Virus record (IMG/VR): IMGVR_UViG_3300020473_000010
Coordinates: 1 to 64,000 of that record
Direction: 5' to 3' (one strand)
Length of the DNA: 64,000 nt
Part shown: piece by piece, positions 31,680-63,096 of the stretch
Layout: the number at the start of each line of letters is the position of its first letter
Position numbering within the stretch: the first letter of the stretch is position 1
Notes under the pieces: generated by a model
What the model saw: the letters and a program-made list of their open reading frames with translations, nothing else
Told to the model about the DNA's origin: nothing
Database searches by the model: none
Position numbers and translations under genes: made by a program

Positions 31680-31916
31680 TTATTCTTCTTCTCGAGACTT
31701 GGCTGACCACTTAGATTTTGGTAGTTGTTTTTCTATTTTAAACTTGAGAATGGACTTTCCGTTTATTGTTGGATGTCCATATTTGTCTTTGCCGATTTTC
31801 TTTACGATGGTTCTTTTATTCTTAAATCTGCCGGTCAAAATCACATCTCCGACTTTCACGTCGAGAGGAATCGATTCCAAAAGTATCTGCCTTATGTATT
31901 GTCGTAAGTGTTTCAT
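31680..31916 (-). CDS. Leader-bearing small basic protein
   Basis: MKHLRQYIRQILLE + VKVGDVILTGRFKN (KOW-like cargo). Confidence 0.7.
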   Translation of the reverse strand: MKHLRQYIRQILLESIPLDVKVGDVILTGRFKNKRTIVKKIGKDKYGHPTINGKSILKFKIEKQLPKSKWSAKSREEE

Positions 31917-32614
31917 AATCTAAAACTCGCTTTATAAAGATTGTATTCTTTTCCTGTAGAATCATATATCTCATCGAAGACTTTAACCATATCGTCGTAG
32001 TTTTCATCCGGAACAATAACACCGATAGCTTCCCAGTTATCGACCAATGCTTCGTTACCTAAGAAGTCGTCAGGATCCCAATCTTCTCTACTAAGGACTA
32101 TACTCTCATCATCGACAACACCAATACCTTTATTTGCTCCGGAGCTTTTCACTCTTTCCGGATCAGCTTTTTTATAGAATTCTGAATATCCGGTTTGCAG
32201 GGCATCCATATCATTTGCTAGCAATGTTATGTAACCGTTAATTATGAGACCATATTTTCCAAACGCACTAGTTCCAGGCATTTCGCCTGGAAGATAAGCT
32301 GCAGCACTTAATTCATCTCGGGCTGATGGAGACTTAAGCATTTTAATTATTTTAGATAAATCTTTTGACCAATGCACTAACTCTAGAGTATCAATGAATT
32401 TTCTATCTGCATGTTTTGCAAAAGCTTTCTTCATTATTCGACCCATCGCCGCTCGATCTTTATAACCCTGTAATACTTTTTCATCTGGATCAGAGTCTTC
32501 ATCACTGATATCTCGAAATGTGTCATCATAATTCGGGTTGTTTAATAGATCTAGAACGAAAGATTCTCTGTCTTCTAGGAGTATTTGTCTTATATATTGT
32601 CGCAATCGTTTCAT
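31913..32614 (-). CDS. Leader-bearing protein, paralog family KHAD...VHW...ELS...NEALVDNW
   Basis: MKRLRQYIRQILLE; aligns by eye with 33849, 39199, 44413. Confidence 0.7.
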   Translation of the reverse strand: MKRLRQYIRQILLEDRESFVLDLLNNPNYDDTFRDISDEDSDPDEKVLQGYKDRAAMGRIMKKAFAKHADRKFIDTLELVHWSKDLSKIIKMLKSPSARDELSAAAYLPGEMPGTSAFGKYGLIINGYITLLANDMDALQTGYSEFYKKADPERVKSSGANKGIGVVDDESIVLSREDWDPDDFLGNEALVDNWEAIGVIVPDENYDDMVKVFDEIYDSTGKEYNLYKASFRL

Positions 32615-33201
32615 AACATTACCAGTTTGCCATCAACTTTGAGAGAATTTATGGTTGTGGGTTCTTTTGTATATCTTTTGCTTAGCGGGGAGTCCATCCA
32701 CCCACGTGGACCTTCATGATCCATAGGAGTTGATTGGTCGCAATTGTCTTCTTCTTCCGGGGTAAAATAATTATCAAAATCATCCAATTGCGATGATTTG
32801 ACATCGCTTCTGCGCTCCATATAATATCTCCAAACATACTCGGCTTCTTCAGAGACCGATTCTCTATCCGCAATTAAGCCATTCGCTATCTGTGTTGCAA
32901 ATTCAATTGCAATATCATAAAGCAGAGGTCCCCAACCATGGCCGGCGTTCGCCATTCCAACCTTCATTGCGCCGCCGCAAGGACCATAATCAGTATCCCT
33001 CCCGATTGTTATTCTTCCCATGGGAGCGCCTGAGGGCAACGTTACAATTTGATTGGGATTATCTTTGTATCCATAATATATCATATAATATGCTTCGTTT
33101 GTCTGTTTAATAACAACTACAAACTGATCCGGAAGATCATCTGTTGTCATCATTCCTTCTGTGAGGAGGACTTGTCTTATATATTGTCGTAGTTGTTTCA
33201 T
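32611..33201 (-). CDS. Leader-bearing GNAT-like protein
   Basis: MKQLRQYIRQVLLTE; GHGWGPLLY...DRESVSEEA.YVW. Confidence 0.55.
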   Translation of the reverse strand: MKQLRQYIRQVLLTEGMMTTDDLPDQFVVVIKQTNEAYYMIYYGYKDNPNQIVTLPSGAPMGRITIGRDTDYGPCGGAMKVGMANAGHGWGPLLYDIAIEFATQIANGLIADRESVSEEAEYVWRYYMERRSDVKSSQLDDFDNYFTPEEEDNCDQSTPMDHEGPRGWMDSPLSKRYTKEPTTINSLKVDGKLVML

Positions 33202-33213
33202 CAAGAATTCTCT

Positions 33214-33852
33214 TTAATATATGTATTCCGGTATTTTATTAAATGATAAACCTTGAGCCGTTCCTAATATCAATACTTCTGCCATACATTCATCTTCATC
33301 ACCGCCAACAATGTCAGATCCGCTCCAGTCTGGAAGTTCTTCAGCTAAATCTGGAACGTGAAAACCGTAATCTTCAAGCTCATCAAAAAGCAAATCAGGA
33401 ACGCCAATCTCTTCAAACTGTTCTTCTGTAAGATCACCCAGCATTCTAACGTCGTTGCCAAGCATGTATTTAACTATCTTTATAATATGTTGACGTGGAT
33501 AACATCGATCGTCATCCATCAGATCCCGGAAGAAGCCATATCCCTTATCAAAGAATTCTGACTTCTGGCCGAATTCATAAACCATTTCGTCTGCTAGCTC
33601 ATAGTCTCCCAGATATTCTCCAAGCTTCTCAAAGTAAAAACTCATTAAACCTTGCTTATCGACAAAACCTAGATCCGGACCATTCCATAATACGAGGATT
33701 CTAGAATAATTTGTGTGAGCCCATTCTAACATTTCCCCAATATCAAAAGGAGTATTACTTTCGTAAGCAGGTTGAATGTCAACAATGACCAGAGTATCTG
33801 AGCTAACGCCTTCTTTTAGTACTTGTCTTATGTATTGCTTTAATTGATTCAT
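33214..33852 (-). CDS. Leader-bearing isochorismatase/cysteine-hydrolase-like protein
   Basis: MNQLKQYIRQVLKE; LVIVDIQ, DKGYG, GGDEDEC (D-K-C triad spacing). Confidence 0.6.
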   Translation of the reverse strand: MNQLKQYIRQVLKEGVSSDTLVIVDIQPAYESNTPFDIGEMLEWAHTNYSRILVLWNGPDLGFVDKQGLMSFYFEKLGEYLGDYELADEMVYEFGQKSEFFDKGYGFFRDLMDDDRCYPRQHIIKIVKYMLGNDVRMLGDLTEEQFEEIGVPDLLFDELEDYGFHVPDLAEELPDWSGSDIVGGDEDECMAEVLILGTAQGLSFNKIPEYIY

Positions 33853-34979
33853 GGCCATTCTCCATTCGGAGGTGCTTTTAATAATAGATTTCCGTTTATA
33901 TCATATAAAGGAATATTCCAGTATTCTTGCGCTATAAATAACCGCTTCCATCTTAGCCCTAAGTGTTTCCCAGGCCGTTCTAGTTTTCCAACATTTTCTT
34001 TCACCCATTCATCTGTTATTATTAATCCGATAGGTTTCCAATTATCGACCAAGGCTTCATTAGTGGTTCGATTTGTTGGGTTAAAAGTTTTTGCATCTAG
34101 AATATAAGGAAATCTTTCTAAAAACCTTGGAGAATATTGGGATCGTTCCAATGCAAAATCAAAATTATACGGTGCTTTTCGTGGTACTTTGTTTATTCCA
34201 GAACTTCGTTTTCTTTGTTTTGCCTTTTCTAATTCTTCTTCTGAAAAATATTTTTCTTCACTACGGTATAAAGGAAAATAATCACCTCTATGGCCCGAGT
34301 GGATATGGTCCATATTATTTGCAGCATAAGTAATTTTCCCTTTTATCCAGAGTCCATAGCTTACACGTCGCGGTTTACTAAATGGATGACCTGGCGCCGA
34401 TATAGTTGCTGATAATTCATCTTTGTTTGTTACTGCCATTAAATATTTTAAATCATATTCATCACCTGTCCAATGGACTGTATTAAGCTTTTTTAAAAAT
34501 TCATGATCAGCATGTTTTGCGAACAATTGTTTAAGTTTTCTTCCGATCCACATTTCAGATTTAGGAAGAATTTCATCTTGTTTTGTAACTGGCAGTGTTC
34601 CTAATCTTTGGAGTTTAGCACCATCTTCAACAAAAGAATATGCATCCTCTAAAAGTATTTTCTTTATATATTTCCGCAATTTTTGTTCATTTGTTTGACT
34701 ATATTTTTCAGCCCACATTCTATCATTTTCTTCTTCTCGTCTGCGAAGTTCAGCTCTCCACTTTTCTATAGACCAGCCCGTAGGTTCTAAAAGTATATTG
34801 TAGTGTTGTCCCCATCCTCCATCCGGAAACAATCTTTCCCCTTCCTCGTCAACAAATTTGTTTACTGCATCTAAAGTCCATGGCAAGTCTTGGGATGGAA
34901 TGCTCATGCTTTTGGCCAACTCTATTGCTTGGATTATTCCTTCATAACCAGAGTTCATTAGTGATTTGAGGTTTTTCAT
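33849..34979 (-). CDS. Two-module protein: QDLPW module + internal leader + NEALVDNW family domain
   Basis: Internal QKLRKYIKKILLE. Confidence 0.65.
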   Translation of the reverse strand: MKNLKSLMNSGYEGIIQAIELAKSMSIPSQDLPWTLDAVNKFVDEEGERLFPDGGWGQHYNILLEPTGWSIEKWRAELRRREEENDRMWAEKYSQTNEQKLRKYIKKILLEDAYSFVEDGAKLQRLGTLPVTKQDEILPKSEMWIGRKLKQLFAKHADHEFLKKLNTVHWTGDEYDLKYLMAVTNKDELSATISAPGHPFSKPRRVSYGLWIKGKITYAANNMDHIHSGHRGDYFPLYRSEEKYFSEEELEKAKQRKRSSGINKVPRKAPYNFDFALERSQYSPRFLERFPYILDAKTFNPTNRTTNEALVDNWKPIGLIITDEWVKENVGKLERPGKHLGLRWKRLFIAQEYWNIPLYDINGNLLLKAPPNGEWP

Positions 34980-34981
34980 AG

Positions 34982-35437
34982 TTACACCAATATATTATTA
35001 AAAACTAAATCGCCAATAAATGTAGCCACAAACTCGTCAATATCTAAATATATTTGAACGCCACTGTACAGCATAATGCCATCGTCCTGAAGTTTGATGC
35101 CTTCATCATCAACCCAAACGGTCGCATAGCTTTCGTCACTAGATAAATCACCCCAGCTAAAAAAGAATTCTATTCTAGGTGTTTCTTCATATAGTTCCAT
35201 ATTGAAGTTTCCATCGGATCCGGTTGTTCGATTCATTATCGGTTGTATGCTTTTCTCGATTTTTTTTAATACTTCTAATTCTAAGTTTATATCTAACCCT
35301 AAAGACAGTGCAAGTTCTTTTGCATGCAGGAAATTATCATGGTGTCCGGCAGTTGCCATAGATTTAATCTTGGAAACATGATCTCCTGGAGTAGATTCTA
35401 AAACTAGTTTTCTTATATATCGCCGCAAGTGTTTCAT
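34982..35437 (-). CDS. Leader-bearing hypothetical protein
   Basis: MKHLRRYIRKLVLE. Confidence 0.65.
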   Translation of the reverse strand: MKHLRRYIRKLVLESTPGDHVSKIKSMATAGHHDNFLHAKELALSLGLDINLELEVLKKIEKSIQPIMNRTTGSDGNFNMELYEETPRIEFFFSWGDLSSDESYATVWVDDEGIKLQDDGIMLYSGVQIYLDIDEFVATFIGDLVFNNILV

Positions 35438-36219
35438 TACCAATTACCATCCTGTAATCTATCATAAGGGTCTATATTTACATATACTTCGAAGCTTTCT
35501 TCGTCAATACCGGTGATCTCTATATTTGATTTTTCCCAATTAAGAATTTGTTCAGCTTCATCGAAATCATCCTGATCCGGTGGAGTTATAGATGCATCAG
35601 CACCATGATTCATTTGGCCATCCTCGGGATCAATGGCCTGGAATCCGCCTTCAAGTCCAGCGAATGCTTGGTATTTTGGATCCATTGCTTGATCGTAGTT
35701 AAGTCCTTGTATGGCAACATCGCCGTGATATTCTGGGTTAGTACTTATGATGTTCCAAATTTTTAAGTCTGGATGTCTACTTACTTCCGGTCCTAACATG
35801 TACGCCAATTCACTTGCTTGTTCCCATTCGTCAGCATCAACAAGTTGCATTATCTTAGCAACTTCTTCTTTTGATTCTTTAATCAGTTGGCCTATGTATT
35901 GCCGCAAGTGTTCATCTAACCAACCACTTTTGGCCAATTGGTACTCAATCGACTTGGCTGCATCAGCTCTGTCGAATGCATGTTTGTATTCTTTCCAAGT
36001 CCAGCCTGTGGGTTCTAGAATCTGCTCGACTTCTTCGTCCCAGGACATCCCAGAAGATCTGCGACCGAAGACTGTCATATGATGGTAATCAACATACATG
36101 AGCACTAATTCTGCGGTCCATGGCAAGTCTTGGGTTGGGATACCCATATCTTCAGCTAATGTAATTGCCTGAATCATTCCTTTATATCCAGAATCCATTA
36201 ATGCTTCAAGTTGTTTCAT
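35437..36219 (-). CDS. Two-module protein: QDLPW module + internal leader + acidic domain
   Basis: N-terminal module paralogous to 33849; internal HLRQYIGQLIKE. Confidence 0.65.
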   Translation of the reverse strand: MKQLEALMDSGYKGMIQAITLAEDMGIPTQDLPWTAELVLMYVDYHHMTVFGRRSSGMSWDEEVEQILEPTGWTWKEYKHAFDRADAAKSIEYQLAKSGWLDEHLRQYIGQLIKESKEEVAKIMQLVDADEWEQASELAYMLGPEVSRHPDLKIWNIISTNPEYHGDVAIQGLNYDQAMDPKYQAFAGLEGGFQAIDPEDGQMNHGADASITPPDQDDFDEAEQILNWEKSNIEITGIDEESFEVYVNIDPYDRLQDGNW

Positions 36220-36755
36220 AAATCTCCTCCTACCCAGTCGATCCATTCCTGTTGTTTTTCTTCTGACAGGTCTTTAAACCAGTTGTTTGTAAAGTCCTTG
36301 TATGCATCTGATCTAAATTTTACCATCACCTTTGCTGATTCTTTTGGGTTGGGCATCCAATTTTCCCAGCCAGCCATATGAAAGATTTGCCACCCAGATA
36401 ATTCTTCAAGGACATAATCCAAGAGTTCGTGTTGTTTTAAGCCCGGGTGTGGGTTTACGCCTGTGTCGTCTTCTGCCTGCATTAACTTCTTTATATCGTC
36501 TCTAAGAGTAGTAAAGATGTCACCCAAAACACTGGCTGTTTCTTTATCTGGGTGATATTGTATTAGCTCGATTCCTTGGTTGGCACTTTGAAGGAATGTA
36601 AGGATAATCTTTTCTGCAAGCTCAAAGTTTTCTAAAGCTTCTTCGTCTTCTGGGTTCTGTGGTCCGTCTTGGATTTGAGGGCTTCCAGGTTCCCCAGGTG
36701 GAAGAACCACTTCTTCGGCCAAAAGTTTTCTTATGTATCTGCGCAAGTGTTTCAT
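36216..36755 (-). CDS. Leader-bearing hypothetical protein
   Basis: MKHLRRYIRKLLAEE. Confidence 0.65.
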   Translation of the reverse strand: MKHLRRYIRKLLAEEVVLPPGEPGSPQIQDGPQNPEDEEALENFELAEKIILTFLQSANQGIELIQYHPDKETASVLGDIFTTLRDDIKKLMQAEDDTGVNPHPGLKQHELLDYVLEELSGWQIFHMAGWENWMPNPKESAKVMVKFRSDAYKDFTNNWFKDLSEEKQQEWIDWVGGDL

Positions 36756-37153
36756 TATATAACTATCGCTACCTTTTCTGATAAAAATTCAGCAACTCCA
36801 TGGAGTTCGTCAAATAGCCGGTCGTATCCTCCACCTTCAACATTCCAACCACCAAAATAACTTTTTGTTATAGTGTATGTATCACCAGATCGAAGATCTG
36901 TTCTTTTAACTTTAATAGGTGCATCTGTCGACATGCCTATTTCATAAACATTACCTTCAATATCGATAAGCTTATCCCGCCCTTCAGATGACCAAAACGG
37001 CCTTTCTTGTTTTGCAAAACGGCGTTGCCAAGCTTTCTGGGTTTTCCTTGCTGGCAACGATCCAGGCCAGCCATTTCCACCCCAGCCATAAGTTGGCGTA
37101 GCTTGTTTCATTTCTTTTAAAACTTTTCTTATGTATCGTCTTAAATCTTTCAT
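36755..37153 (-). CDS. Leader-bearing hypothetical protein
   Basis: MKDLRRYIRKVLKE. Confidence 0.65.
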   Translation of the reverse strand: MKDLRRYIRKVLKEMKQATPTYGWGGNGWPGSLPARKTQKAWQRRFAKQERPFWSSEGRDKLIDIEGNVYEIGMSTDAPIKVKRTDLRSGDTYTITKSYFGGWNVEGGGYDRLFDELHGVAEFLSEKVAIVI

Positions 37154-37154
37154 A

Positions 37155-37946
37155 TCATAATCCTATAAAAATAACCATACCAGAAGAATTATAATCTCTT
37201 CCTAATGATTTCCAAACACGTTGCGCATCTTCAGAGGTGCCACCGCTGAAAGGGCTAGAACCACCACCCATTGTGCATGCATGGGCGCCAACAAAGACTC
37301 CGCCATATCTTTTTGAATATTCCACAGCTTGATCAATAAAAGCCTTATAAATCTCTTTGCCGTAACCTTTCCCTCTATTTTCAGGATTTGAAATCCAAGC
37401 ATTATTTACTTCATAGAATCTAGGCCTGAACTTTGCTGGTCTTTCTTTCATGCTATATCCATGGGGAGAATCCGGATCTTCAATCATATCTTTTGTTGTA
37501 TTGTTTGCTTCAAATTTTTCCTTGGCTGCAATATATTCTGGTGTTTGTTTTAAAATATCGACATCTGATTGACATTCTTTAAACCTTAGTTGTTCTCCAC
37601 CTTCTGCATATCCAATTCCGGATAACTCTACTCGAAAGTAATCTGGGCCTCCTTTGTGTATAAAATTTGATCTTTCCAAAAGATGTATTTTTGATTCTAT
37701 TTTTATACCATTTGCAAAATCATGATTTAATCCCCATAAGAAATTCTTCATTTCTTTATGTGAAACATTTCCTATAGCATCTTGGACGGCATCTACGACG
37801 GTATTGAGTTTTGGGTGTCTTAATTTTCTGGGGTTAACTTTCTCATTACCCCATTGGTTTGTATCGATATAATGACCAACCTTATCAAGGAATCCCATCT
37901 CTTTTTCTAACAAAATTTGTCTTATGTATTGACGTAAATACTTCAT
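37155..37946 (-). CDS. Leader-bearing GNAT acetyltransferase-like protein
   Basis: MKYLRQYIRQILLE; acetyl-CoA motif A PENRGKGYGKEIY; SEDAQRVW. Confidence 0.65.
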   Translation of the reverse strand: MKYLRQYIRQILLEKEMGFLDKVGHYIDTNQWGNEKVNPRKLRHPKLNTVVDAVQDAIGNVSHKEMKNFLWGLNHDFANGIKIESKIHLLERSNFIHKGGPDYFRVELSGIGYAEGGEQLRFKECQSDVDILKQTPEYIAAKEKFEANNTTKDMIEDPDSPHGYSMKERPAKFRPRFYEVNNAWISNPENRGKGYGKEIYKAFIDQAVEYSKRYGGVFVGAHACTMGGGSSPFSGGTSEDAQRVWKSLGRDYNSSGMVIFIGL

Positions 37947-38060
37947 TTTTTCACCAGGATTTGCAAGACCAATAACGGGCTTTATCTTTGGGCCCAGGAT
38001 TATCACAATTGTGACGAGCTCTGAAAGATTTTCTTGCTTTAGGGTTTGATTTTCTTATTT

Positions 38061-38459
38061 TCATATTTGGGTCACCAAATTGAACTTTTTTGCTTTGTTT
38101 TGTCCTTTGCATGATCCGGATTTATATTTACCATCGCCAGAAACATATACTTTTGATTTTTTGTTTTTGTTCTCAGGGTTAGACATTTTTTTATTTAATG
38201 TTACTTTTCTACCATCATAGCATGCTTCAAGGATTCGGCTTATTAATATCCGTAATTTAGATTCATTTAATTCGTCAACCTTCTCTTCTGATTCGTCTAA
38301 TTCTGATATTTTCTCACAATTGTTTACTCTTTTTCCTGTTTTTGAAGAGATTTTAGTTTTCTTGCCCGACTTGGCTCCTGGGGAATAACCATCCCAACAT
38401 TTTTTTTCGTTGAGAGATTCGCGAATGATTTGTTTGAGTTGTCTTTTTGTAATTTTCAT
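38061..38459 (-). CDS. Leader-bearing basic protein
   Basis: MKITKRQLKQIIRE; KCWDGY...NNCEK; internal LRILISRILE. Confidence 0.65.
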   Translation of the reverse strand: MKITKRQLKQIIRESLNEKKCWDGYSPGAKSGKKTKISSKTGKRVNNCEKISELDESEEKVDELNESKLRILISRILEACYDGRKVTLNKKMSNPENKNKKSKVYVSGDGKYKSGSCKGQNKAKKFNLVTQI

Positions 38460-38682: not shown

Positions 38683-39186
38683 TTAACATTTCTTTTTAAG
38701 GTTTTTGATTCCATCTGGATGCCAAATGCACCCTGATGCAACATCCCAACTATAATACCAAAAATGTCTTTGGCGTTTTGAAGGAAGGTATGGGCATATT
38801 TCTATTCCTGCATATTTTTTCGAAACCAAGTTCCAATCGATTACTAACTCAAATTTTCCTTTTCTTCCATATTCAGTTTCAAATTGGTCAAATTCTGAAT
38901 CATTAGTAATAAATAATATTTTCTCTTCATTGAGAAATACTTCGTAAACAGAATCATATCCTCTGTGACTATAGCCTCCAAGTTCAATATTACAAAATTC
39001 TTGCCATACATTTCCGCAGTCATACCATAAGCCTGTGGGTTTTTTAGGGCCTATTTGATCAGATGCCGATGGTTGTGATTGTGGCTGCAACAATTTTAAG
39101 ATTTCATCGTCTCGAGAATGATGAAGTCTTTGAACTTGGATTCCTTCCAACAAAACGGTTCTTATATATTGTCTTAATTGTTTCAT
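38683..39186 (-). CDS. Leader-bearing conserved phage protein
   Basis: MKQLRQYIRTVLLE; KPTGLWY...YAGIEI...WDVASGCIW. Confidence 0.65.
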   Translation of the reverse strand: MKQLRQYIRTVLLEGIQVQRLHHSRDDEILKLLQPQSQPSASDQIGPKKPTGLWYDCGNVWQEFCNIELGGYSHRGYDSVYEVFLNEEKILFITNDSEFDQFETEYGRKGKFELVIDWNLVSKKYAGIEICPYLPSKRQRHFWYYSWDVASGCIWHPDGIKNLKKKC

Positions 39187-39198
39187 AAACTTTTCTCT

Positions 39199-41502: not shown

Positions 41503-41821
41503 TTATCCAATGTAACAGGTCATCATAACTATATTCATAAACCTGTGGTTGTCTTTCTTTCCAGCCATCTTTGCTCTCAACAAATGTTTGCTCAATTTTA
41601 CCTAAAGTATAATATAAAAATTTAGGGTATACGATATTTCTCCCATTGGAATAATCGTGTACCATATCTGAAGCTTTGTGAATTAAGAAAGCATGCCCAA
41701 AAGGTGTGCTTTCTAATTCACCTTGCCCAATAACTTCAGCATGGACAAGAATCCATTCACCAGATCGGCCATGGTCCATCATATATTTTCCAGCTATTTC
41801 ATAGCAATCTCCAAGCATCAA
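41450..41821 (-). CDS. Small Cys/His protein, possible transglutaminase/papain-like fold
   Basis: GDCYEIA...LVHA...GHAF. Confidence 0.5.
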   Translation of the reverse strand: MMLGDCYEIAGKYMMDHGRSGEWILVHAEVIGQGELESTPFGHAFLIHKASDMVHDYSNGRNIVYPKFLYYTLGKIEQTFVESKDGWKERQPQVYEYSYDDLLHWINETEHWGPWELETESGY

Positions 41822-45824: not shown

Positions 45825-45893
45825 AATTGAACTCCCAACAAGTAATCATAATTATGCTCTTTTATTCAATATTCCTATTGTTTATTTGAATAC

Positions 45894-51816: not shown

Positions 51817-51835
51817 AAAGGTTCCCCCCTTTATT

Positions 51836-55300: not shown

Positions 55301-58201
55301 CGGTGTAATATCTTTTTCATTTTTAATATCCTTTTCTATCTGGCGGAAGTGTCATTTCGGAGAACCAACCCATTTCCCAGGCATCTGCTAAATGTTTGTT
55401 ATGTGGTTCTACCTTTGGGTTTGTGACTATATTCTCTCCTGCTAAAGCTGCAGCGGATCCTTCTTCGTAAGCACTTTGTTCTTCAAAACTTAAATTTAAA
55501 AACTCTTGTTCTCTTTGAAGAGAATCCCATTTTTTATCTGGGGGCTTATGTGGTTGGTATCCATGAGAATCTTCGAAACTTTCTAAACTATCATAAACAT
55601 CCGTTTCACGAGAATCCGGAACAAAATTGCCCCAGCGCTGGAAATCTTTTTTCATTTCCTTTTGAACTAAATATGGAACTTCTTCTAATGTTTCCCGTAT
55701 AATTCTTCTTAGCTGTTTTCTTGTGAATTTCATTTTAATTTCTCTCAGAGGCCTGAATACATGTCCATAGCAGCTTCGAAGGCTTCAGCAACTGAAAGGT
55801 CTCCAATGCCAATTCCATCGATATCTTCTACAACAGCATCAGCTGGCATAGGATGTCCATGGTCATCCTCGAATTGAGAGAGAAAATCGCCAATATTCAT
55901 ATTATTGTGGTAATACTCTCCAAGGTTATAAGAAGTATCAGATTCATTAACAAAAATCTCAAGGTCCTGGCCATTAGAGGTTGGTTGTATCCAAAGGGTT
56001 AACCTCATGTGTCGGCTTTCACTAAGAATACGGTTGTATTCTTCTCTAATAATTCTTTTTAGTTGTCTTTTTGTGATTCTCATTATTTCGCCTTATTGTT
56101 AAATAAAATTTATTATCTGGAAGCTATCCAAGCAATCATAGGTGTGTAAGAAGATTCAGGAAAACGGGGATGCATTGGGAATTTGCCGCGTTTATATTTT
56201 CTTATTCCAGCAGCTATTTCCTTTACAGCCGGTAAGTCTCGGACAAAGAGTGCGCTGTCTTCATGGTTCAAGATGGCTTCCATTGCGTCATTAACCCCAA
56301 CAGAATTTAATTCTTCTGCAGCTACATCGACCAACTCAAGTGAGATGAGACCTTCAGCTAAGGCAGATTCACAAAACCCTGGAATATCATACCAATCTTT
56401 ATGATATATTCCAGCCTCTTCTGCTTGGGCTGCCAAGTCTTCACTGTGAAACGCAGATTCTCTAATAAAGCCTTTCCGCTTGAGCTTATTATACTCTTCT
56501 TTAATAATTCTCTTAAGTTGTCTTTTTGAAATTTTCATTTTGTTTTATCCTAAAAATCTGAACCGGACTCTCTTTGTTCGGCAGCCGCAGCATTCCATTC
56601 ATTTTCTATTGCTTGATAAATCTCGTCACCAAAATACTTGGTGTCTATTCCAGGAAACTGTCGAGCAAAAACCTGTAGTATTTGGTTGAAAAGATCCATT
56701 ATTTCTGGGCTATCTTCCATATATTGAGGGGCTTCCTTGATAAGCTTCTGCTTTTCTTCGCGTATAATTCTTTTCAATTGTCTTTTTGAAATTTTCATTG
56801 TTGGATTTACCTCACGCATGGGAAAATGGTTACTTGTTAAATCATTTGAACGAATTCATCAAAATCATCTGCCGCGAATGAATCTCCTTCCATGTACATG
56901 TTAACATACCAGTCTTTAAGTTCGTCTAGTGGACCGGTAACTTCCACTTCTGGAAAACCGTTTGGTCCCTCTCCATAGACTTGTACTTCAAGATCTGGGT
57001 ACCTGCCTTGAATCGCAGTTGCTGGATCAACTTCTGCTCCCCAATCTACCATAATCCCAGCTTGTGGCCCATATGATTCACGGATTAATCCTCGTCGTTT
57101 TAATCTAGAATATTCTTCTCTAATAATTCTCTTAAGTTGTCTTTTTGTGATTTTCATTTTTGTTTTCCTTAAATAGCTATTTGTGCTTGTTATCGTCGAC
57201 GTTTATACGAATAATCGCTAGCACTGGCTCTACCGCCAATAAAATCATCGTGGTCTTGTGGTCCAACAGAATCAGCAAGGTCCATCCAAGCGGAAGCTGG
57301 TAATCCTATAAAAGATTCTAGCTGTTGAACAGAACCTCCAATCCAGTCATCGCCATAGCCGCCGCCTTCAAAAAACTCTATTCCGCCCAACCCTTGTTCG
57401 GCATCCCCAAGTAAATCTCTGCTGCTATCACCGGTAAGCTGTGCAATATCTCCAAGAGTAATCCACTGAAGCCCTTGAGCAGATTCGCGAAGCAAACCCT
57501 GTTTTTTTAATCTAGAATACTCTTCTCTAATAATTCTCTTAAGTTGTCTTTTTGTAAGTCTCATTTTGTTTTCCTATTGTTGTAACATTGCTTGCAAGTT
57601 TGCAATGATATGTGGGATTTCGCTTTTCGGAAATTCTAGGAGTGTTCTTCCGAGCTCCATATAAACCGTACCGTTGACGAACATAGTCATATGTATCCCG
57701 CCAGGTGTTTCACCCATCCATGCTTGTTCATGCCCTGGATCATCTTCAAAATCAGGGTGGGAATCTTGCCACTCAGTAAGAATCTTTTGCTTCTCTTCTC
57801 TGATAATTCTTTTGAGTTGTCTTTTTGTAATTTTCATCAATAAACCCCTATTAATCGATTGGTAGACCAGCTACGTAATCATCCCATACCTGTGATAATT
57901 CTCCAGTAGACCCTCGAGAATCATATGCTAATCTCCAAAGATAATCTTCAAGCATAGGATCTGGATATTCAACGCCAGCAGCTGCAGCTAATTGGCTTAA
58001 TAATTCCTCTGCTTGATCATCCTTTCTGTTTTGAACCAATTGCTGAAAGTGATCCAAACTTCCCACTTGTGGTGGAACTCCGCTTTTTTTCGCATGAGAA
58101 GCATACGGCTCATCGAAGGTTTCTCTAATCAAGCCTTGTCGCTTCAGCCTAGAGTATTCTTCTCTAATAATTCTTCTTAATTGTCTTTTTGTCAGTCTCA
58201 T
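52332..58201 (-). repeat. Tandem array of 15 genes with MK(I/L)TKRQLKRIIREE leaders and unrelated, mostly acidic cargo
   Basis: ORFs 52332, 53008, 53331, 53747, 54214, 54648, 54953, 55323, 55745, 56113, 56550, 56837, 57190, 57574, 57851; identical 35-nt DNA at 57114-57148 and 57521-57555. Confidence 0.9.
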
Positions 58202-58255: not shown

Positions 58256-58498
58256 TTAAAGATATACCTTAATGTATCCAGTATTAAATATGTCGTTGGA
58301 TTGTATTTTCTCGAAAGAATATCTATCCAAGACAGCAAGAACCAATGTTTTCATTCGATATGATTTTCCTGTGATAATCATAGCCCAACCAGAATATTCT
58401 CTATGATTATAGATAAATCTATCTACTGTGTTTTCTACGTCCGCATGTTTTACTCCGTGAAGATCTAGTGTTGGGTTTTTTCTTTCTTTTTTTCCCAC
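58256..58498 (-). CDS. Smr/MutS2-domain protein
   Basis: LDLHG...IITGKS. Confidence 0.8.
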   Translation of the reverse strand: MGKKERKNPTLDLHGVKHADVENTVDRFIYNHREYSGWAMIITGKSYRMKTLVLAVLDRYSFEKIQSNDIFNTGYIKVYL

Positions 58499-59826: not shown

Positions 59827-60210
59827 TTATTTCAATATTTTTATAAATTTTTCTGCGATTTGGTTTTCTATAGATTCTGTAAGAGGATTACCTTCTGTTT
59901 TGAGGCGGTGTAATTTATAATCCATATATTCAAAGGCAGATCTTAATCTATCTTCAGCCGTAGTAATTTTGTCTTGAACCCATCCGGGTAAATCATCTCC
60001 ATCCTGTAACCGGTCATGCAAAGATTGAGACCATTTTCCCATTCTGAAAAGTTTTGCTTTTGACATTCTACCTTCATGAGAATCTGATTTTACTTGGCCA
60101 TAGTCAAACATACGGCCATCTTCACTAGTATGCTCATATGGATATGAATCTATAGAGGCAGAACAAGCTTCTCTAATAATTTTTCTTAATTGACTTTTAG
60201 TAACCTTCAT
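59827..60210 (-). CDS. Leader-bearing protein with a conserved large-phage helical domain
   Basis: MKVTKSQLRKIIRE; HEGRM.K..L...LHD...D.DDLP.WVQ.KIT.A.D.L.SA..Y. Confidence 0.65.
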   Translation of the reverse strand: MKVTKSQLRKIIREACSASIDSYPYEHTSEDGRMFDYGQVKSDSHEGRMSKAKLFRMGKWSQSLHDRLQDGDDLPGWVQDKITTAEDRLRSAFEYMDYKLHRLKTEGNPLTESIENQIAEKFIKILK

Positions 60211-60493
60211 TCCAATCTACCCCTTTAGCTTTATCCTGGCCGGATTCATATCCTTCCATATAATCCTTACGATCTGGATATTCTGGTGAAAGGCCGTCGA
60301 CGGCATCTTCATATCCAAAACGAACCATCTCTTCATCCCAAGTTCCCTTCCAGTCATCTTTAAAGAATCCTCTTTTGACAACTCCACCCGGGCCATAAGG
60401 GTTTTCTCTATATGCTCCTCGGCTTCTGCCGGTATCGACATCTGATATAATTTCAGAAATAATTTTTTTAAGATTTCTTCTACTTATTTTCAT
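60197..60493 (-). CDS. Leader-bearing hypothetical protein
   Basis: MKISRRNLKKIISE; GY.DA..G...YM.GY motif also in 53331. Confidence 0.6.
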   Translation of the reverse strand: MKISRRNLKKIISEIISDVDTGRSRGAYRENPYGPGGVVKRGFFKDDWKGTWDEEMVRFGYEDAVDGLSPEYPDRKDYMEGYESGQDKAKGVDWNEGY

Positions 60494-60508
60494 TAATGTT
60501 AATTCCTT

Positions 60509-61426
60509 TTATGAAACTTGGGTTGTTATTCCGTGACCTTGATATTCTCTTTGAGAAGGAATCCATTTTTCTAATGCGGAATCAATATCTAAGTCTTTGA
60601 TTTTTATATTTCTAGCATTTTTTCCTAGAAACTGTTTATACCATTCAATAAACTTTACTTGCAATTCGTCATCTAGCATTTTTACATATTCATCATCAAT
60701 ATTAAAAAGTTCCAAAAATGGGGCGGTTCTAAACTTTACATCTGGTCTTTGGGCAACTAAATCAACCATATTATCAATTGCTTTGGCTGGTTTTTCTTCT
60801 TTCCCCATTAACCATTCGACTCCTTTTTTTGCCCATTTTAATACTTTGTTAACATCTTTGCCGAAACCGGCAATAGTACCCATGCCTGGAATATCTCCTA
60901 TTTTGGCAAACCAAGTGTCAGACCATTCCAGAATATTTTCCCATCCATCCAAATCTAAATCTGCGACAATTGTCCTAGCGTTTTTAATGATTCCTTCTGT
61001 CCAATCATCCAGAATTTCTGCAGTTTGTTCTGCCAATTCCATCATTGTTGTTTCTTTGTCGTTTAAAGAGTTTTTAAATACTCTTATATTTGAAGCTATA
61101 ACCTCTAAAGAAGCTTCGAATTCAGCCAGCCTTTTTCTTTCGTTTTCATCTTTTGTCGAAGTACCATCTTTTTTAACGACTTTTATCCATTTTGTAACTA
61201 TGCCTTCTAATTTCGAAATTTCTTCGAATAAAGGTTTTCTTTCAAGTTGGATTTTTTCTAATTCTTCTATTTTATCTAACATTTCTCCAACAGTTATATC
61301 TGCAGGAGGTATTCCTTCACCACCTTCTTTTAGAATTTTTACAGTATGCATACAATATATTGGAAGAACTTCTTCTACTAATATTGACGCTTTAAAATAT
61401 TGCCATCTTCTTTTTGATTCGTTCAT
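60509..61426 (-). CDS. Helical hypothetical protein
   Basis: Coiled-coil N-half; acidic. Confidence 0.55.
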   Translation of the reverse strand: MNESKRRWQYFKASILVEEVLPIYCMHTVKILKEGGEGIPPADITVGEMLDKIEELEKIQLERKPLFEEISKLEGIVTKWIKVVKKDGTSTKDENERKRLAEFEASLEVIASNIRVFKNSLNDKETTMMELAEQTAEILDDWTEGIIKNARTIVADLDLDGWENILEWSDTWFAKIGDIPGMGTIAGFGKDVNKVLKWAKKGVEWLMGKEEKPAKAIDNMVDLVAQRPDVKFRTAPFLELFNIDDEYVKMLDDELQVKFIEWYKQFLGKNARNIKIKDLDIDSALEKWIPSQREYQGHGITTQVS

Positions 61427-61437
61427 TTGATATAACC

Positions 61438-63096
61438 CTATTTCTTTTTGCCTGTTATAGCCCATTCCATAAATCGATTATGACGATCTTGTTCCAAGAC
61501 CAGAAGTTGAGCTGAATAAACAATGTGTTCTGGAAATAAATTTAATAATTCAGTTTTATCTATTTTTCCGGAAGCTAATGCTTTTTGGACTCTTTTAATT
61601 AATCTTTGATCTTTTGGATCCATTTGTGAAAGACTATCTAAAAACCTTCTGTGTTCTACGGAAGATGCTACCGCAATATCTCTTTCTTTTTCATCAGCAA
61701 ATTCTGAAGTTTTATAATCTTCATCTCTAAGATTTGAGTCATATGAACTAGCATCGGCCATTTGTCTTAAATCTGGCCTTGAAGAGTCTACAGGAGGTAA
61801 CAATCTAAATTCAACCGAATCAGTATACCCACCAAAAGTTGCGCTCATGGCCGCACTCATGAAACAAGGAGATTTTTGAGCAATAGTAATACCATAATCT
61901 GCACTCATTGATGCTTCTTTTCTTTTATATTTGCGAACGGCGGCGGCGCCAAAAGTTTTCTTTGCTATAGTGTGGGAGAGTTTGGTGAAAAACATGTCTT
62001 TTTGATGACTGGTAATTGATGCCGCGGCATCAAATTTACTTCCAAATATTTGAGCAGCAGGTATAAATTCTGTACCTTTATCTGCCCAAATCATCCAACC
62101 TTTTCCCCCAAGTCTTACAGCATAAAATTTAGCCCCTTTATACTCATCTGGGATTTTTTCATCATTTATTACAGGAATTTCTTCCCAAATACATGGGACT
62201 GTGCCGGTCTTTTTTATTGTAAATCTTCTTGTACTGGCAAAATCTCCAACTATTTGACCAGAAATACAACCTACTAAAACACCTGAAGCTCTTTGTTTTT
62301 TAATGCACAACCCTAATAAAGGACCTAAAAACACTGGGGATGAATCAACGCCGTGATTTTGGGTTAAAGAACCCTTAACGGAATAAAATTGATTACCGCC
62401 AATAAGGCCGTCGGCAAACATTGCATCCGGTGCATTTCCACCGCCTGTTGGGACAAGATTAACATTTATAGCATCAAATACATTCTGAGCTAAATCTTCA
62501 AATAAATCTCCGGTTGCGCCTTTATTTCCGACGAAACTATAAACCATATTTGAAAAAGATTGTAGATCATCTCTTAATTTTGTGTCTGTTTTCCCAGTGT
62601 TTTTATTGACTGAAGTTCCATCCCAACTAGGGGATATTCCAATTAAATTTCCTTGTTTAGGAAGATAAAAAGCTTCTTTTCCAATTTTGATTACCGCATG
62701 AGTTCTTTTACCAGATTTACCTGATCGAGCAGGAGTTGATCTTGAAGAAGATCCAGTACTTGCTGAAAAATCTGCAAATTGGTTTTTGAATGTTTCTAAT
62801 GAATTTAAATCAGAATCTGAAAAAACATGGTTTCCTGATTTTTTTAATTTTCCGATTTTTGATCTAGATCTACTAACTCCATTTTTGGCCATAGATTTGA
62901 GATCTTTAATATCAAATTTGGTTACGCCAGGTTCAATTCTAGATAACTTAGTTCTTTTTGGCAGGTCTTTAAACCCTAGTTGGTCAAGCTTGTCTCTTAA
63001 ATCATCGTTTTCTAACGAAGATAAACCTTCTGGATCAGATCGAAAATCATACTCTGATAACAAACGTTTTAAACTATATTTTTTCTGTTTAGACAT
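61438..63096 (-). CDS. Leader-bearing protein with possible PD-(D/E)xK nuclease domain
   Basis: MSKQKKYSLKRLLSE; GDLFEDLA...APDA..AD...YSVK. Confidence 0.5.
   Translation of the reverse strand: MSKQKKYSLKRLLSEYDFRSDPEGLSSLENDDLRDKLDQLGFKDLPKRTKLSRIEPGVTKFDIKDLKSMAKNGVSRSRSKIGKLKKSGNHVFSDSDLNSLETFKNQFADFSASTGSSSRSTPARSGKSGKRTHAVIKIGKEAFYLPKQGNLIGISPSWDGTSVNKNTGKTDTKLRDDLQSFSNMVYSFVGNKGATGDLFEDLAQNVFDAINVNLVPTGGGNAPDAMFADGLIGGNQFYSVKGSLTQNHGVDSSPVFLGPLLGLCIKKQRASGVLVGCISGQIVGDFASTRRFTIKKTGTVPCIWEEIPVINDEKIPDEYKGAKFYAVRLGGKGWMIWADKGTEFIPAAQIFGSKFDAAASITSHQKDMFFTKLSHTIAKKTFGAAAVRKYKRKEASMSADYGITIAQKSPCFMSAAMSATFGGYTDSVEFRLLPPVDSSRPDLRQMADASSYDSNLRDEDYKTSEFADEKERDIAVASSVEHRRFLDSLSQMDPKDQRLIKRVQKALASGKIDKTELLNLFPEHIVYSAQLLVLEQDRHNRFMEWAITGKKK

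Follow-up and report, generated by a model that had tools for sequence, protein, structure and literature searches.

What is a short shared peptide doing on about 40 proteins of one phage? The question is raised by bases 1-64000 of the IMG/VR contig UViG_3300020473_000010 (288,697 bp), the whole stretch of DNA that was analysed (hereafter the window), which comes from an uncultured, marine, T4-like phage with a 289-kb genome. The 14-residue leader is likely a capsid-targeting propeptide of this T4-like jumbo phage, directing its cargo to the head and then to the host, and the capsid-targeting interpretation offered by an earlier reading of the letters (the sequence-only reading) is partly supported.

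Two regular expressions, one each for leader classes A and B, gave 32 matches in the window, all on the minus strand, of which 28 coincide with the start of an ORF. An HMM of 14 residues, trained on 29 seeds and with matches counted at >=9.7 bits, recovered 35 leader copies, again all on the minus strand; the top plus-strand match in the window scored 4.7 bits. N-terminal position with Met at position 1 was found for 31 of the 35, as the sequence-only reading had described for most leaders, and four were internal or C-terminal (starts near 52622, 41871, 34679 and 35910). Its count of about 40 ORFs holds, because the 35 HMM matches are joined by about six genes with degenerate leaders (6721-8562, with its true start near 8535, 8532-9908, 15191-17047, 17057-18088, 18096-18497 and 61438-63096). 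The five outlying members that it named are among these, two of them (8532-9908 and 15191-17047) being doubtful. The leader genes form two arrays in the window, the first (31680-45264) mostly of class A with one class B gene inside (38061-38459), and the second (52332-58201 plus 59827-60493) of class B, with ordinary genes between them (45264-52312). The members of the first array are as follows.

31680..31916, minus strand: class A leader, 64-residue basic small beta-barrel cargo (HMM 25.8 bits; AF2); in L021, L025 and L033 the same cargo follows a class B leader, and in L035 and L040 it is part of a fusion
31913..32614, minus strand: class A leader (HMM), 219-residue cargo from a family of 277 representatives; AF2 pLDDT 93.7, with no confident match of the model among known folds
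32611..33201, minus strand: class A leader variant ending LLTE, cargo paralogous to part of 40318-41502 (HMM 17.3 bits)
33214..33858, minus strand: class A leader (Met at 33852), very acidic cargo (HMM 19.5 bits); orthologue in L035 at 86% identity
33849..34979, minus strand: two modules, an N-terminal domain, then an internal leader (34647-34679) and a second cargo (regular expression and HMM)
34982..35437, minus strand: class A leader, cargo (HMM 21.9 bits)
35437..36246, minus strand: two modules; a leader-like segment inside the protein begins near 35910 (HMM 9.7 bits); N-terminal domain paralogous to that of 33849-34979
36216..36755, minus strand: class A leader, cargo (HMM 22.1 bits)
36755..37153, minus strand: class A leader, cargo (HMM 22.5 bits)
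37155..37946, minus strand: class A leader, cargo (HMM 21.2 bits)
38061..38459, minus strand: class B leader, basic cargo, inside the class A array (HMM 22.5 bits)
38683..39186, minus strand: class A leader, cargo (HMM 21.6 bits)
39199..40317, minus strand: degenerate class A leader (ends LLLKE), 357-residue cargo paralogous to 44413-45264 (sequence reading, HMM)
41450..41818, minus strand: cargo-like ORF without its own leader, right behind the stranded leader copy of the next entry
41818..42363, minus strand: weak N-terminal leader and full C-terminal leader copy (41830-41871), with a stop codon and a change of frame between the latter and the cargo of 41450..41818, the stop overlapping the start of that ORF (regular expression, HMM)
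42364..43107, minus strand: class A leader, cargo with HExxH motif (HMM); its orthologue is an internal module of an L040 polyprotein
43094..43663, minus strand: class A leader, RelA/SpoT-type HD alarmone hydrolase (Pfam HD; PDB matches 7qps, 2e-8, and the (p)ppApp hydrolase 7smg, 7e-6)
43679..44416, minus strand: class A leader, P-loop kinase (Zeta_toxin/AAA_33, Pfam 5e-14; match to zeta toxin 1gvn, 0.005)
44413..45264, minus strand: class A leader, cargo; the leader genes of the class A array begin here (HMM 18.5 bits)

The class B array and the outlying members comprise the following.

52332..53003, minus strand: N-terminal class B leader and a second, internal one (52584-52622) (regular expression, HMM)
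53008..53325, minus strand: class B leader, acidic cargo (HMM)
53331..53747, minus strand: class B leader (22-residue form), acidic cargo (HMM)
53747..54214, minus strand: class B leader variant, basic cargo (HMM 13.4 bits)
54214..54627, minus strand: class B leader (22-residue form), acidic cargo (HMM)
54648..54956, minus strand: class B leader (Met at 54950; 22-residue form), cargo (HMM)
54953..55225, minus strand: class B leader (22-residue form), acidic cargo (HMM)
55323..55733, minus strand: class B leader, acidic cargo (HMM 23.3 bits)
55745..56083, minus strand: class B leader, acidic cargo (HMM)
56113..56538, minus strand: class B leader (27-residue form), acidic cargo (HMM)
56550..56819, minus strand: class B leader (Met at 56798; 22-residue form), acidic cargo (HMM)
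56837..57157, minus strand: class B leader (27-residue form), acidic cargo (HMM)
57190..57564, minus strand: class B leader (27-residue form), acidic cargo; protein P0001 (HMM)
57574..57837, minus strand: class B leader (22-residue form), acidic cargo (HMM)
57851..58201, minus strand: class B leader (27-residue form), acidic cargo; heads the class B array (HMM)
59827..60210, minus strand: class B leader (14-residue form), cargo (HMM 21.3 bits)
60197..60493, minus strand: class B leader variant, acidic cargo (HMM 20.8 bits)
61438..63096, minus strand: 552-residue protein, degenerate leader-like N-terminus ending L-S-E (by eye; under the HMM threshold)
18096..18497, minus strand: degenerate leader of class A type (ends ILLE), set back a few residues from the start (4.3 bits, partial); late-like motif upstream at 18557-18565
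17057..18088, minus strand: 343-residue protein, degenerate leader ending LLE (sequence reading); weak PHROG polynucleotide kinase match
15191..17047, minus strand: 618-residue protein, very weak leader-like N-terminus, doubtful member (sequence reading)
8532..9908, minus strand: 458-residue protein, degenerate leader ending I-x-E, doubtful member (sequence reading)
6721..8562, minus strand: protein of about 604 residues (start near 8535), class A-like leader ending ILLE, HExxH motif (regular expression match; gene call in L007)

Both classes are 14 residues long and strongly basic and amphipathic, with a common pattern in which positions 2, 5 and 9 are basic, 8, 11 and 12 are hydrophobic and 14 is Glu. 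This Glu is kept in 174/178 class B and 17/20 class A leaders. The position of the last [LIVM]xE within the first 32 residues peaks at 14, 22 and 27; the leader consists of 14 residues with an optional extension to 22 or 27, every form ending in [LIV]-x-Glu. It is conserved as a peptide and not as DNA, because synonymous codons vary almost freely: the same-codon fraction among identical residues was 0.52 in class A (0.44 expected from independent draws) and 0.63 in class B (0.46 expected). T4-type genomes are known to have mobile regulatory cassettes at the starts of genes, and the repeat might accordingly be a nucleic-acid element (for instance a cassette for recombination, or a signal acting in translation or transcription) with peptide conservation as its by-product. 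This origin has a negligible probability and is effectively refuted by the codon variation, with synonymous sites near saturation while residues are kept, and by the DNA upstream of the leaders, which showed no conservation when compared; moreover, the leader is maintained across genomes of 36% to 53% GC.

The tag pattern had more than 599 matches in IMG/VR viral contigs and, among 185,579 cellular genomes, only six loci, each of them on a MAG contig; one of the six has an identical counterpart among the IMG/VR viral contigs, and the remaining ones are presumably phage too. The tag is thus essentially confined to viral contigs, and the mainly cellular matches that had been named as a possible objection did not appear. 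None of the cultured relatives carries the tag.

The cargos behind the leader were described as unrelated between genes, which is largely so (only six BLASTP pairs among 43 cargos); likewise, the tails of 560 tagged proteins are unrelated, with rapid cargo turnover between related genomes. Of the domains first proposed, the HD hydrolase (RelA/SpoT-type) and the zeta-toxin kinase (Zeta_toxin/AAA_33) were recovered and HExxH occurs in two proteins as a motif alone, whereas GNAT, cysteine hydrolase, HAD and nuclease-like domains found no support in Pfam, PHROGs, NCBIfam or PDB sequences. The analogy with polymorphic toxin systems is loose, only one toxin-like domain being recognised and immunity genes being absent. 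The leader itself is modular, since one cargo occurs with leader A, with leader B or at an internal junction, and another cargo family has at least four leader classes, all ending in [LIV]xE. Cargos are both joined and split at leaders, and fusion is tolerated: the leader was in frame downstream of another ORF in 13 of 201 occurrences, and leaders persist where modules meet in polyproteins.

A conserved leader followed by a hypervariable tail in tandem arrays is also the pattern of RiPP precursors such as prochlorosins, and the leader could be recognised by a machine that modifies or exports proteins (secretion substrates included), with the tails as products; Cys makes up 3.0% of metagenome class B tails vs 1.4% of the window's other proteins. 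However, the tails are 60-600 residues long with folded enzymes among them, Cys is scarce in the cargos of the window itself (0.4%), a double-Gly type site is absent, and no modifying enzyme or transporter was found within or adjoining the arrays, making this explanation very improbable.

A link to the capsid is provided by the same contig, which encodes a T4-type head module comprising TerL, a gp20-type portal, a Peptidase_S77 prohead protease, a 576-residue scaffold-like protein, gp13 and a Gp23-type capsid protein (gene at 171,937-173,898). The gp21-type protease that the sequence-only reading expected as a partner is thus present beside portal, scaffold and capsid protein. It matches 2,602 phage records and is a true gp21 relative, the positions of T4 His85 and Ser140 and the N-terminal LLxE site being invariant. 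In T4, gp21 cuts after L/I-x-E, and capsid-targeting sequences are N-terminal propeptides of 10-20 residues (PMC9026906, PMC5694885); the leader's end, as had been claimed, matches this published motif (PMC9026906). The [LI]xE motif is enriched in the phage's scaffold (20 vs 11.9 expected, P 0.006), in the L014 scaffold (21 vs 10.4, P 0.0007) and in core proteins of 281 (13 vs 4.7) and 135 residues (6 vs 1.7), and four sites lie within the first 60 residues of the capsid protein; portal, TerL and sheath showed no enrichment. In 32 relatives the N-terminus of the conserved 135-residue head-module protein is class-B-like, and three of the orthologues score 12.3-12.5 bits on the leader HMM (wrong-strand maximum 9.2). 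Furthermore, class B genes begin 72 nt behind the capsid gene in L014, past the capsid terminator, and likewise come after it in L058 and L072. The predicted co-occurrence of leaders and T4-type head genes was observed on all four contigs where both were checkable.

Two late-promoter-like motifs lie ahead of the arrays and are suggestive only.

45848..45856, minus strand: motif CATAATTAT, 32 nt before the gene heading the class A array and just past a terminator-like hairpin (45898-45918)
58284..58292, minus strand: motif CATATTTAA, 83 nt ahead of the first class B gene

Counting against the capsid-targeting reading, no enrichment was seen for the T4 late consensus TATAAATA, and the candidate late motif was enriched only in the head module and not across the window.

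Capsid targeting and cleavage are favoured because the leader ends in the gp21 motif [LIV]-x-E at three discrete lengths, because that motif is over-represented in the core and scaffold proteins of the phage itself, because a conserved head-module protein begins leader-like, because relatives' leader genes come right behind the capsid gene, and because adjacent cargos are sometimes fused with the junction leader retained. It is unlikely, by comparison with these observations, that the leader is an uncleaved amphipathic helix (a docking, oligomerisation, membrane-binding or nucleic-acid-binding module) of mature cytoplasmic host-takeover proteins with no capsid link, as this would leave unexplained the near-invariant Glu with its hydrophobic P3, the three discrete lengths all ending in that motif, the match to the phage's own protease specificity and to a head-module N-terminus, and the leaders behind capsid genes and at fused-module junctions. 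Its basic, amphipathic character would nevertheless suit such a helix, as would the distance of the arrays from the head module in this genome (110-140 kb), which counts against a capsid link. The AF2 model of the 31680..31916 protein has a helix at 2-14 ending at Glu14, a linker and a folded barrel cargo; in one cargo family, however, the modelled leader helix runs on to residue 24 (2-24) without a linker, which counts against a propeptide and in favour of the uncleaved helix.

Tagged proteins might also reach the prohead and be cleaved there as auxiliary core or scaffold parts or as charge or volume fillers, later degraded or expelled on DNA entry or kept as structural internal proteins, instead of being injected as effectors. 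Cargos acidic like the scaffold's acidic tracts, most class B cargos being small and without match to a known enzyme family, and the fragmentation of core proteins by T4 gp21, whose propeptide fragments presumably exit the head (PMC9026906, PMC5694885), are consistent with this. It is nonetheless quite unlikely, given that such extreme diversity and turnover of cargos are unusual for structural parts, that some cargos, among them the RelA/SpoT-type hydrolase and the P-loop kinase, are enzymes whose substrates lie in the cytoplasm, and that cleavage motifs are enriched in real core proteins and not in cargos (49 [LI]xE vs 51.7 in their own shuffles; control proteins 71 vs 56.4, enriched). The lack of depletion in cargos also counts against the propeptide reading.

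Under the favoured capsid-targeting reading, the leader would mimic the N-terminus of a conserved prohead-core protein and dock the tagged protein on the assembling scaffold core, probably at the scaffold's very acidic tracts. The capsid shell would then close around the core, the gp21-type (S77) prohead protease would cleave after the leader Glu, and the freed cargo (about 40 distinct proteins, small and acidic for the most part, with a few enzymes such as the alarmone hydrolase and the zeta-like kinase) would remain in the head, exit with the DNA at infection and possibly act as effectors in the host.

In sequence, the leader does not resemble the capsid-targeting sequence of T4, which counts against the favoured reading, and the internal proteins of T4 are basic whereas the cargos of this phage are mostly acidic (median pI 4.75 in the window, 4.05 in metagenome relatives), which fits awkwardly beside packed DNA and counts against head packaging. 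There is also a parallel, in that the N-termini of T4 IPII and IPIII resemble that of gp22 just as the leader here resembles the N-terminus of a head-module protein. The tag system is a new, greatly expanded form of the T4 system of capsid-targeting sequence and internal proteins, for which we infer packaging, cleavage and injection.

The minus strand carries almost every gene in the window (GC 36.8%), and two regular expressions for classes A and B of the leader, a basic amphipathic peptide ending in [LIV]-x-Glu, gave 32 matches, all on that strand and 28 of them at ORF starts. A 14-residue profile seeded with 29 unambiguous N-termini returned 35 matches of at least 9.7 bits, again all on the minus strand, the best opposite-strand score being 4.7 bits; 31 are N-terminal with Met at position 1, and four, starting at about 52622, 41871, 34679 and 35910, are internal or C-terminal. 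Degenerate leaders were also detected on about six further, mostly large, proteins (6721, 8532, 15191, 17057, 18096 and 61438), and the estimate of about 40 leader genes made in the sequence-only reading is therefore right. The genes lie mainly in two arrays, between which ordinary genes were found (thioredoxin-like, CCA-adding enzyme, methyltransferase, JmjC).

31680-45264, minus strand: array 1, mainly class A
52332-58201 and 59827-60493, minus strand: array 2, class B

A full leader copy at 41818-41871 (minus strand) forms the C-terminus of ORF 41818-42363, whose stop overlaps the ATG of the leaderless cargo ORF 41450-41818 (cargo denoting the protein behind a leader); this stranded leader reflects either the decay of a leader-cargo gene or a recent fusion with a frame change. 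A second family of at least ten ORFs of about 75 residues, sharing an M-K-(I/V)-G-D-L-V-like start unrelated to the leader, was recognised in the ORF list.

11200-11421, minus strand, second family
19636-19860, minus strand, second family
21679-21894, minus strand, second family
23521-23745, minus strand, second family
24065-24292, minus strand, second family
24391-24609, minus strand, second family
48065-48370, minus strand, second family
48306-48533, minus strand, second family
63097-63327, minus strand, second family
63470-63709, minus strand, second family

Auxiliary genes at 416-1354, 2097-2663, 12568-13590, 21898-22890, 48757-49566 and 51042-51629 (minus strand) have as products a PHO4-like transporter fragment, a thymidine kinase, a CCA-adding enzyme and a JmjC protein, together with IMPDH/GMP-reductase-like and adenylosuccinate-synthase-like proteins named from their N-termini only. 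Just outside the window, as read in locus L007 (11825-20939), are genes for NifU, HSP20, a MoxR-type AAA ATPase with a DUF2201 protein, and a trypsin-like protease.

Classes A and B are one leader, both running 14 residues from Met1 to Glu14, with positions 2, 5 and 9 basic and 8, 11 and 12 hydrophobic. Class B occurs in lengths of 14, 22 and 27 residues, each form ending in [LIV]-x-Glu, and across 198 distinct leader ORFs of related loci the final [LIV]-x-Glu within residues 1-32 peaked exactly at 14, 22 and 27. Glu14 was present in 174 of 178 class B and 17 of 20 class A leaders, with I, L or V at P3, and information content was 2.6-4.2 bits per position up to residue 14, 2.5 at residue 15, about 1 at residue 16 and about 0.3 past residue 23. 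The leaders themselves contain 46 [LI]xE sites against 16.3 expected. At identical residues the same codon was used in a fraction of 0.52 (A) and 0.63 (B), where independent draws predict 0.44 and 0.46; Leu and Arg codons differ freely among leader copies, and the DNA upstream is unrelated. A conserved DNA or RNA element is excluded by this near-independent codon use and unrelated upstream DNA, and selection on the leader acts at the peptide level.

For the head genes of the same genome, the capsid gene was located with a relative's capsid protein as bait, and its neighbourhood was read from L030, the locus that holds the head module of the window's own contig. The Gp23-type capsid protein of the contig lies at 171,937-173,898 (100% identity), and L030 carries the following genes in order.

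Large terminase
T4 gp20-type portal
281-residue protein
Peptidase_S77
Five small proteins
576-residue scaffold-like protein
Gp23-type capsid protein
gp13
Tail sheath

Pfam matches were obtained for Portal_T4, for Gp23 and for S77, the last at L030 4968-5582, next to the capsid gene located on the window's own contig, and the 576-residue scaffold-like protein is acidic/basic and rich in [LI]xE. In the protease alignment the positions of T4 gp21 His85 and Ser140, which we take to be the catalytic residues, and an N-terminal LLxE site are invariant. The protease matched 2,602 phage records, with Microcystis phage Mel-JY01 best (54%), followed by T4-like cyanophages (about 42%) and T-even phages (about 32%); the S80 family, the phiKZ-type protease, scored only 9e-4 on it, under its cut-off. 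The small head-module proteins had no useful match in PHROGs. Peptidase_S77, gp20-type portal, scaffold and Gp23 thus sit on the window's contig, bearing out the co-occurrence of the leader with a gp21-type protease and scaffold that had been proposed for this DNA.

The phage belongs to the T4 superfamily and is an uncultured jumbo phage. Shine-Dalgarno-like AGGA or GGAG precedes the leader gene starts, indicating a prokaryotic virus; a giant eukaryotic virus, a possibility prompted by DUF5754 and DUF5824 neighbours, is ruled out by these sequences and by the T4-type head and tail genes. The window is the same as bases 1-64000 of the 288,697-bp contig IMGVR_UViG_3300020473_000010. It is matched as well by the end of a Tara Oceans scaffold of 288,796 bp, and since another assembly crosses that end, the genome is probably circularly permuted. 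At the window start, which is the contig end, lies a tmRNA gene (3-355, minus strand; Rfam RF00023, 102 bits), for which ARAGORN gave the tag peptide ANNNYFYDSERLAA.

T4 gp21 cleaves after L/I-x-E, and the T4 capsid-targeting sequences (CTS) are N-terminal propeptides of 10-20 residues (PMC9026906, PMC5694885, PMC3012670). A Glu-to-Asp exchange prevents processing in T4 and leaves targeting intact (PMC9026906). Analysis of [LI]xE sites in the head module revealed enrichment in the following proteins.

Table. [LI]xE sites in head-module proteins
Scaffold: observed 20, expected 11.9, P = 0.006
Scaffold of the 273-kb relative L014: observed 21, expected 10.4, P = 0.0007
281-residue protein: observed 13, expected 4.7, P = 0.0003
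135-residue protein: observed 6, expected 1.7, P = 0.002

The proteins enriched in this lineage are exactly those that gp21 fragments in T4; no enrichment was found in portal, terminase or sheath, and the capsid protein has four [LI]xE sites in residues 1-60. The gene of the 135-residue protein lies between those of protease and scaffold, and in 32 related genomes its product starts M(A)K[LV][TSK]R..LK.IVKE, then CLVEIL.EG, which is the class B leader pattern with two more cleavage-type motifs. Against the class B profile, in alignments spanning all 12 residues, three orthologues scored 12.3-12.5 bits, compared with a wrong-strand best of 9.2 bits in 1.56 Mb. In the T4 record (AF158101), residues 1-10 of IPII and of IPIII are similar to the gp22 start, and both end in I-A-E followed by Ala; the leader showed no similarity to the IPI, IPII and IPIII N-termini of that record beyond the final [IL]-x-E. 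The scaffold (L030 8227-9957) has a start very like the T4 internal-protein CTS and the T4 gp22 start, suggesting that the ancestral T4-type tag survives on the scaffold and that the accessory proteins use a different one.

For expression timing, the T4 late consensus TATAAATA gave six matches against 7.7 expected and, not being enriched, is uninformative; generic sigma-70 sites were at chance level. In the head module, the motif CATA[ACT]TTA[AT] (CATAHTTAW) occurred nine times against 2.8 expected, a count reached by none of 100 shuffles, and its sites stand about 30-40 nt ahead of most structural genes. Across the window it was not enriched (10 against 10.3 expected), and four of its six minus-strand copies there are intergenic.

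58292, minus strand: late-like motif ahead of the class B array
45856, minus strand: late-like motif ahead of the gene heading the class A array, just past a terminator-like hairpin
Before the leader gene at 18497, minus strand: late-like motif, intergenic
6699, minus strand: late-like motif before the Ig/VWA lipoprotein gene at 6670

The placement of this motif ahead of both arrays is at most suggestive of late expression. Two genes preceded by it encode proteins with a lipoprotein-like signal sequence, one with Ig-like (HYDIN/ASH) and VWA domains (5114-6670, minus strand; motif at 6699) and one thioredoxin/AhpC-like (45264-45824, minus strand; motif at 45856). In addition, a conserved promoter-like block, CTGTGTA, about 20 nt and then TTAAATTATATA, precedes leaderless genes at 46753, 49898 and 59753 (minus strand); being distinct from the head module's late-like motif, it possibly represents an early or middle promoter class.

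The cargos are highly diverse, only six BLASTP pairs being detected among 43 of them. Pfam recognised two, an HD domain in 43094-43663, which by PDB sequence match is a RelA/SpoT-type (p)ppGpp/(p)ppApp hydrolase, and a Zeta_toxin/AAA_33 P-loop kinase in 43679-44416; searches of PHROGs, NCBIfam and PDB sequences gave almost nothing beyond these. Of the domains named in the sequence-only reading, the HD hydrolase and zeta-like kinase thus hold, HExxH is a bare motif in two cargo proteins, and the GNAT, cysteine hydrolase, HAD and nuclease labels, to which the three collections add nothing, remain that reading's only.

Cargo median pI was 4.75 versus 6.92 for the window's other proteins (Mann-Whitney P = 0.005), and only three of 32 scored cargos were clearly basic, so that the cargos do not resemble the small, basic, DNA-associated mature proteins of T4. 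Class B tails from metagenomes had a median pI of 4.05 (n=119), opposite to the strongly basic leader. The cargos hold 49 [LI]xE sites versus 51.7 in their own shuffles, and control genes 71 versus 56.4, a deficit in cargo only relative to controls. The acidic cargo and the unclear motif depletion in it count against capsid targeting; that small acidic cargos are DNA mimics is speculation.

AlphaFold2 modelling of a small cargo precursor (31680-31916) gave a helix at residues 2-14 ending at Glu14, an eight-residue linker and a small beta-barrel (pLDDT 74). The model of a 233-residue family (31913-32614, minus strand) reached pLDDT 93.7, with the first ten residues less confident and the helix extending to residue 24; this is the most expanded cargo family, with four paralogues in the window and 277 representatives. 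Fold searches with the two models returned no PDB match at E <=0.001 and one weak match to an uncharacterised BFVD entry (4.9e-4, TM 0.33). ADP-ribosyltransferase-like and KOW/Tudor-like folds were considered for the modelled cargos and set aside, the top PDB matches being too faint to be reliable. For the 31913-32614 model these were ADP-ribosyltransferase-fold effectors (TM <=0.34), a resemblance that recalls T4 Alt and is unproven.

Leader and cargo are modular. Behind leader A, the cargo of 31680-31916 occurs in the window and in L035; behind leader B, it occurs in L021, L025 and L033 (related loci). In its alignment Arg9, Ile11 and Glu14 of the leader are invariant. Members of the 31913-32614 family bear class A, class B, 'ENWRRYL'-type or 'KQLIEQVV'-type leaders, all ending in [LIV]-x-E directly at the start of the conserved domain, and long proteins of the family have an internal leader immediately before that domain. 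Moreover, the small cargo is a separate gene in the window, is fused ahead of the next cargo in L035 and makes up the final module of a polyprotein of 700 residues in L040, where leader-like linkers occur at every junction. Among 201 distinct leader occurrences, 178 are plainly N-terminal and 13 lie in frame behind another ORF of at least 40 residues. Such fusions would be expected to do no harm if cleavage takes place at the leader, and protease-cut linkers could render gene fusion and fission neutral. Giant polyproteins were seen at L040 1105-3270 and L035 1836-3122, their modules corresponding to separate window genes and their junctions retaining leader-like linkers.

Leader genes accompany T4-type head genes on all four contigs where both could be checked. 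The 273-kb relative L014 has the order portal, S77 protease, scaffold, capsid gene, strong terminator, five leader genes and tail genes, the first leader gene starting 72 nt past the capsid gene; a capsid gene followed by leader genes was also found in L058 and L072, and in L026 leader genes lie 3 kb from the terminase and portal genes. Arrays reach 15-25 genes per 20 kb (L023, L027 and L035). The class B leader is common to 560 proteins of 68-217 residues, and the 120 of these that were listed, whose tails are unrelated, stem from metagenome collections (in many cases Tara or GOS); pattern searches of IMG/VR matched more than 599 class B and 54 class A leaders. Among 185,579 cellular species genomes (596 Gb), six loci were confirmed, all on contigs of metagenome-assembled genomes (MAGs), one identical to an IMG/VR viral contig and another on a contig of 306 kb that packs 25 leaders into 20 kb; these are presumably phage contigs binned into MAGs.

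In 50,697 records of cultured phages no DNA match was found, and class B proteins, the 27-residue leader and the main cargo family were unmatched, in searches where the BLAST low-complexity filter may mask short basic peptides. Mel-JY01, the closest cultured relative by protease, has only a family of three to four genes with a different leader-like start, and pairs of ORFs sharing at least eight of their first 16 residues numbered 179 in the window (165 ORFs) versus 12 in Mel-JY01 (367 ORFs). The three to four ORFs (60276-62715 and 96167-96964; loci L123-L126) start MIKLKSLL(Q/K)EIISDRV, with L-x-E at residues 8-10, and possibly form a small-scale counterpart of the leader system. No account of the tag came up in literature searches on the peptide strings or on CTS in jumbo phages and cyanophages.

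Judged from these sequence patterns, the leader is probably a capsid-targeting peptide removed by the head protease, which would work like the T4 CTS without being homologous to it. Targeting and cleavage of the leader proteins are well supported, if indirectly; injection and effector function of the cargos, a step further removed, may follow. The best explanation is a CTS-like system expanded about tenfold and distributed across a clade of marine T4-like jumbo phages that are uncultured. A broader proposal, on which we consider the case evenly balanced, is that in this clade a short stretch copied from a prohead-core protein serves as a portable 'postal code' specific to the lineage, with at least four interchangeable classes, by which tens of unrelated proteins per genome would be loaded and delivered with the DNA; hundreds to thousands of proteins would then be tagged in the ocean virome, and the arrays would be an open cassette system for injected effectors, whose neighbouring genes could fuse or split freely because the head protease cuts at the code.

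If this is true, looking for the tag would be an easy way to find first-strike anti-defence and takeover proteins by sequence. As a capsid address it would provide a one-line bioinformatic rule by which the injected proteins of an entire phage clade could be listed, a large and almost wholly unannotated reservoir of candidate first-minute takeover or anti-defence proteins (including the alarmone hydrolase and zeta-like kinase), and a new short natural packaging tag for engineered protein delivery by phage capsids.

Compared with known systems, the polymorphic-toxin-like organisation proposed earlier is a loose analogy; the arrays contain no cognate immunity genes (leader genes overlap or are less than 40 nt apart, with no interleaved small ORFs) and one recognised toxin-like domain (zeta/AAA_33). 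RiPP precursors do not fit, the tails being 60-600 residues long and including folded enzymes, and no modifying enzyme having been found in the arrays. Encapsulin cargo-loading and microcompartment encapsulation peptides offer a likeness, as a short terminal peptide sends unrelated enzymes inside a protein shell, which in encapsulins has the HK97 fold; unlike the putative situation here, these are cellular compartments in which the peptide is retained and neither DNA nor delivery plays a part. MuF-domain toxins of temperate phages carry variable effector modules, thought to enter the host with the DNA, behind a constant N-terminal portion associated with the head, an arrangement like the one proposed here. 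Injected 'polyvalent proteins' (PMC7824862) are likewise capsid-carried variable effectors thought to enter the host with the DNA. In both, the constant part is a large folded domain on one or few giant proteins, in contrast to a 14-residue, putatively cleavable peptide on about 40 small genes. Dar proteins of phage P1 are incorporated through ordered protein-protein dependencies, are not known to use a common cleavable tag, and differ from the leader proteins in this respect. They are anti-restriction proteins built into the head and injected (PMC9024508, PMC12810830).

In phiKZ, 201phi2-1 and SPN3US, dozens of head-internal proteins are cut after Glu by a gp21-related protease and ejected into the host; their propeptides have several redundant sites, and paralogues such as SPN3US gp53/gp54 may have identical N-termini (PMC9026906, PMC5694885, PMC10052503). 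Multiple head-internal proteins and processing after Glu by such a protease, both predicted here, are shared with those phages, whereas they have an S80-type protease whose motif is S/A-x-E or A-x-E, and their propeptides are at least 100 residues long and lack a common short tag, and here an S77 protease, [LIV]-x-E and a propeptide of 14-27 residues go with one tag common to all. The T4 CTS, which gp21 removes from IPI, IPII, IPIII and Alt, is the nearest counterpart, likewise a short N-terminal propeptide ending in L/I-x-E, with a gp21/S77 protease and a gp22-like scaffold core, on cargos that have only the tag in common and with a tag that resembles the N-terminus of a core protein (gp22 in T4, the 135-residue protein here). 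CTS have already been suggested to let T4-like phages load varied proteins (PMC3012670, PMC9026906). Unlike the T4 CTS, the present tag, known from sequence alone, is basic and 14 residues long with optional 8- or 13-residue extensions, also occurs internally in polyproteins, has at least four classes exchangeable on one cargo family, and is carried by mostly acidic cargo that includes enzymes, where the T4 internal proteins are basic. The principle is known only at small scale, from T4's three internal proteins together with Alt, and from phiKZ-like phages with many proteins and no common short tag; here a single tag of 14 residues labels about 40 genes within 64 kb, versus three to four in T4, and recurs in more than 600 places in IMG/VR, on abundant, never-cultured ocean phages.
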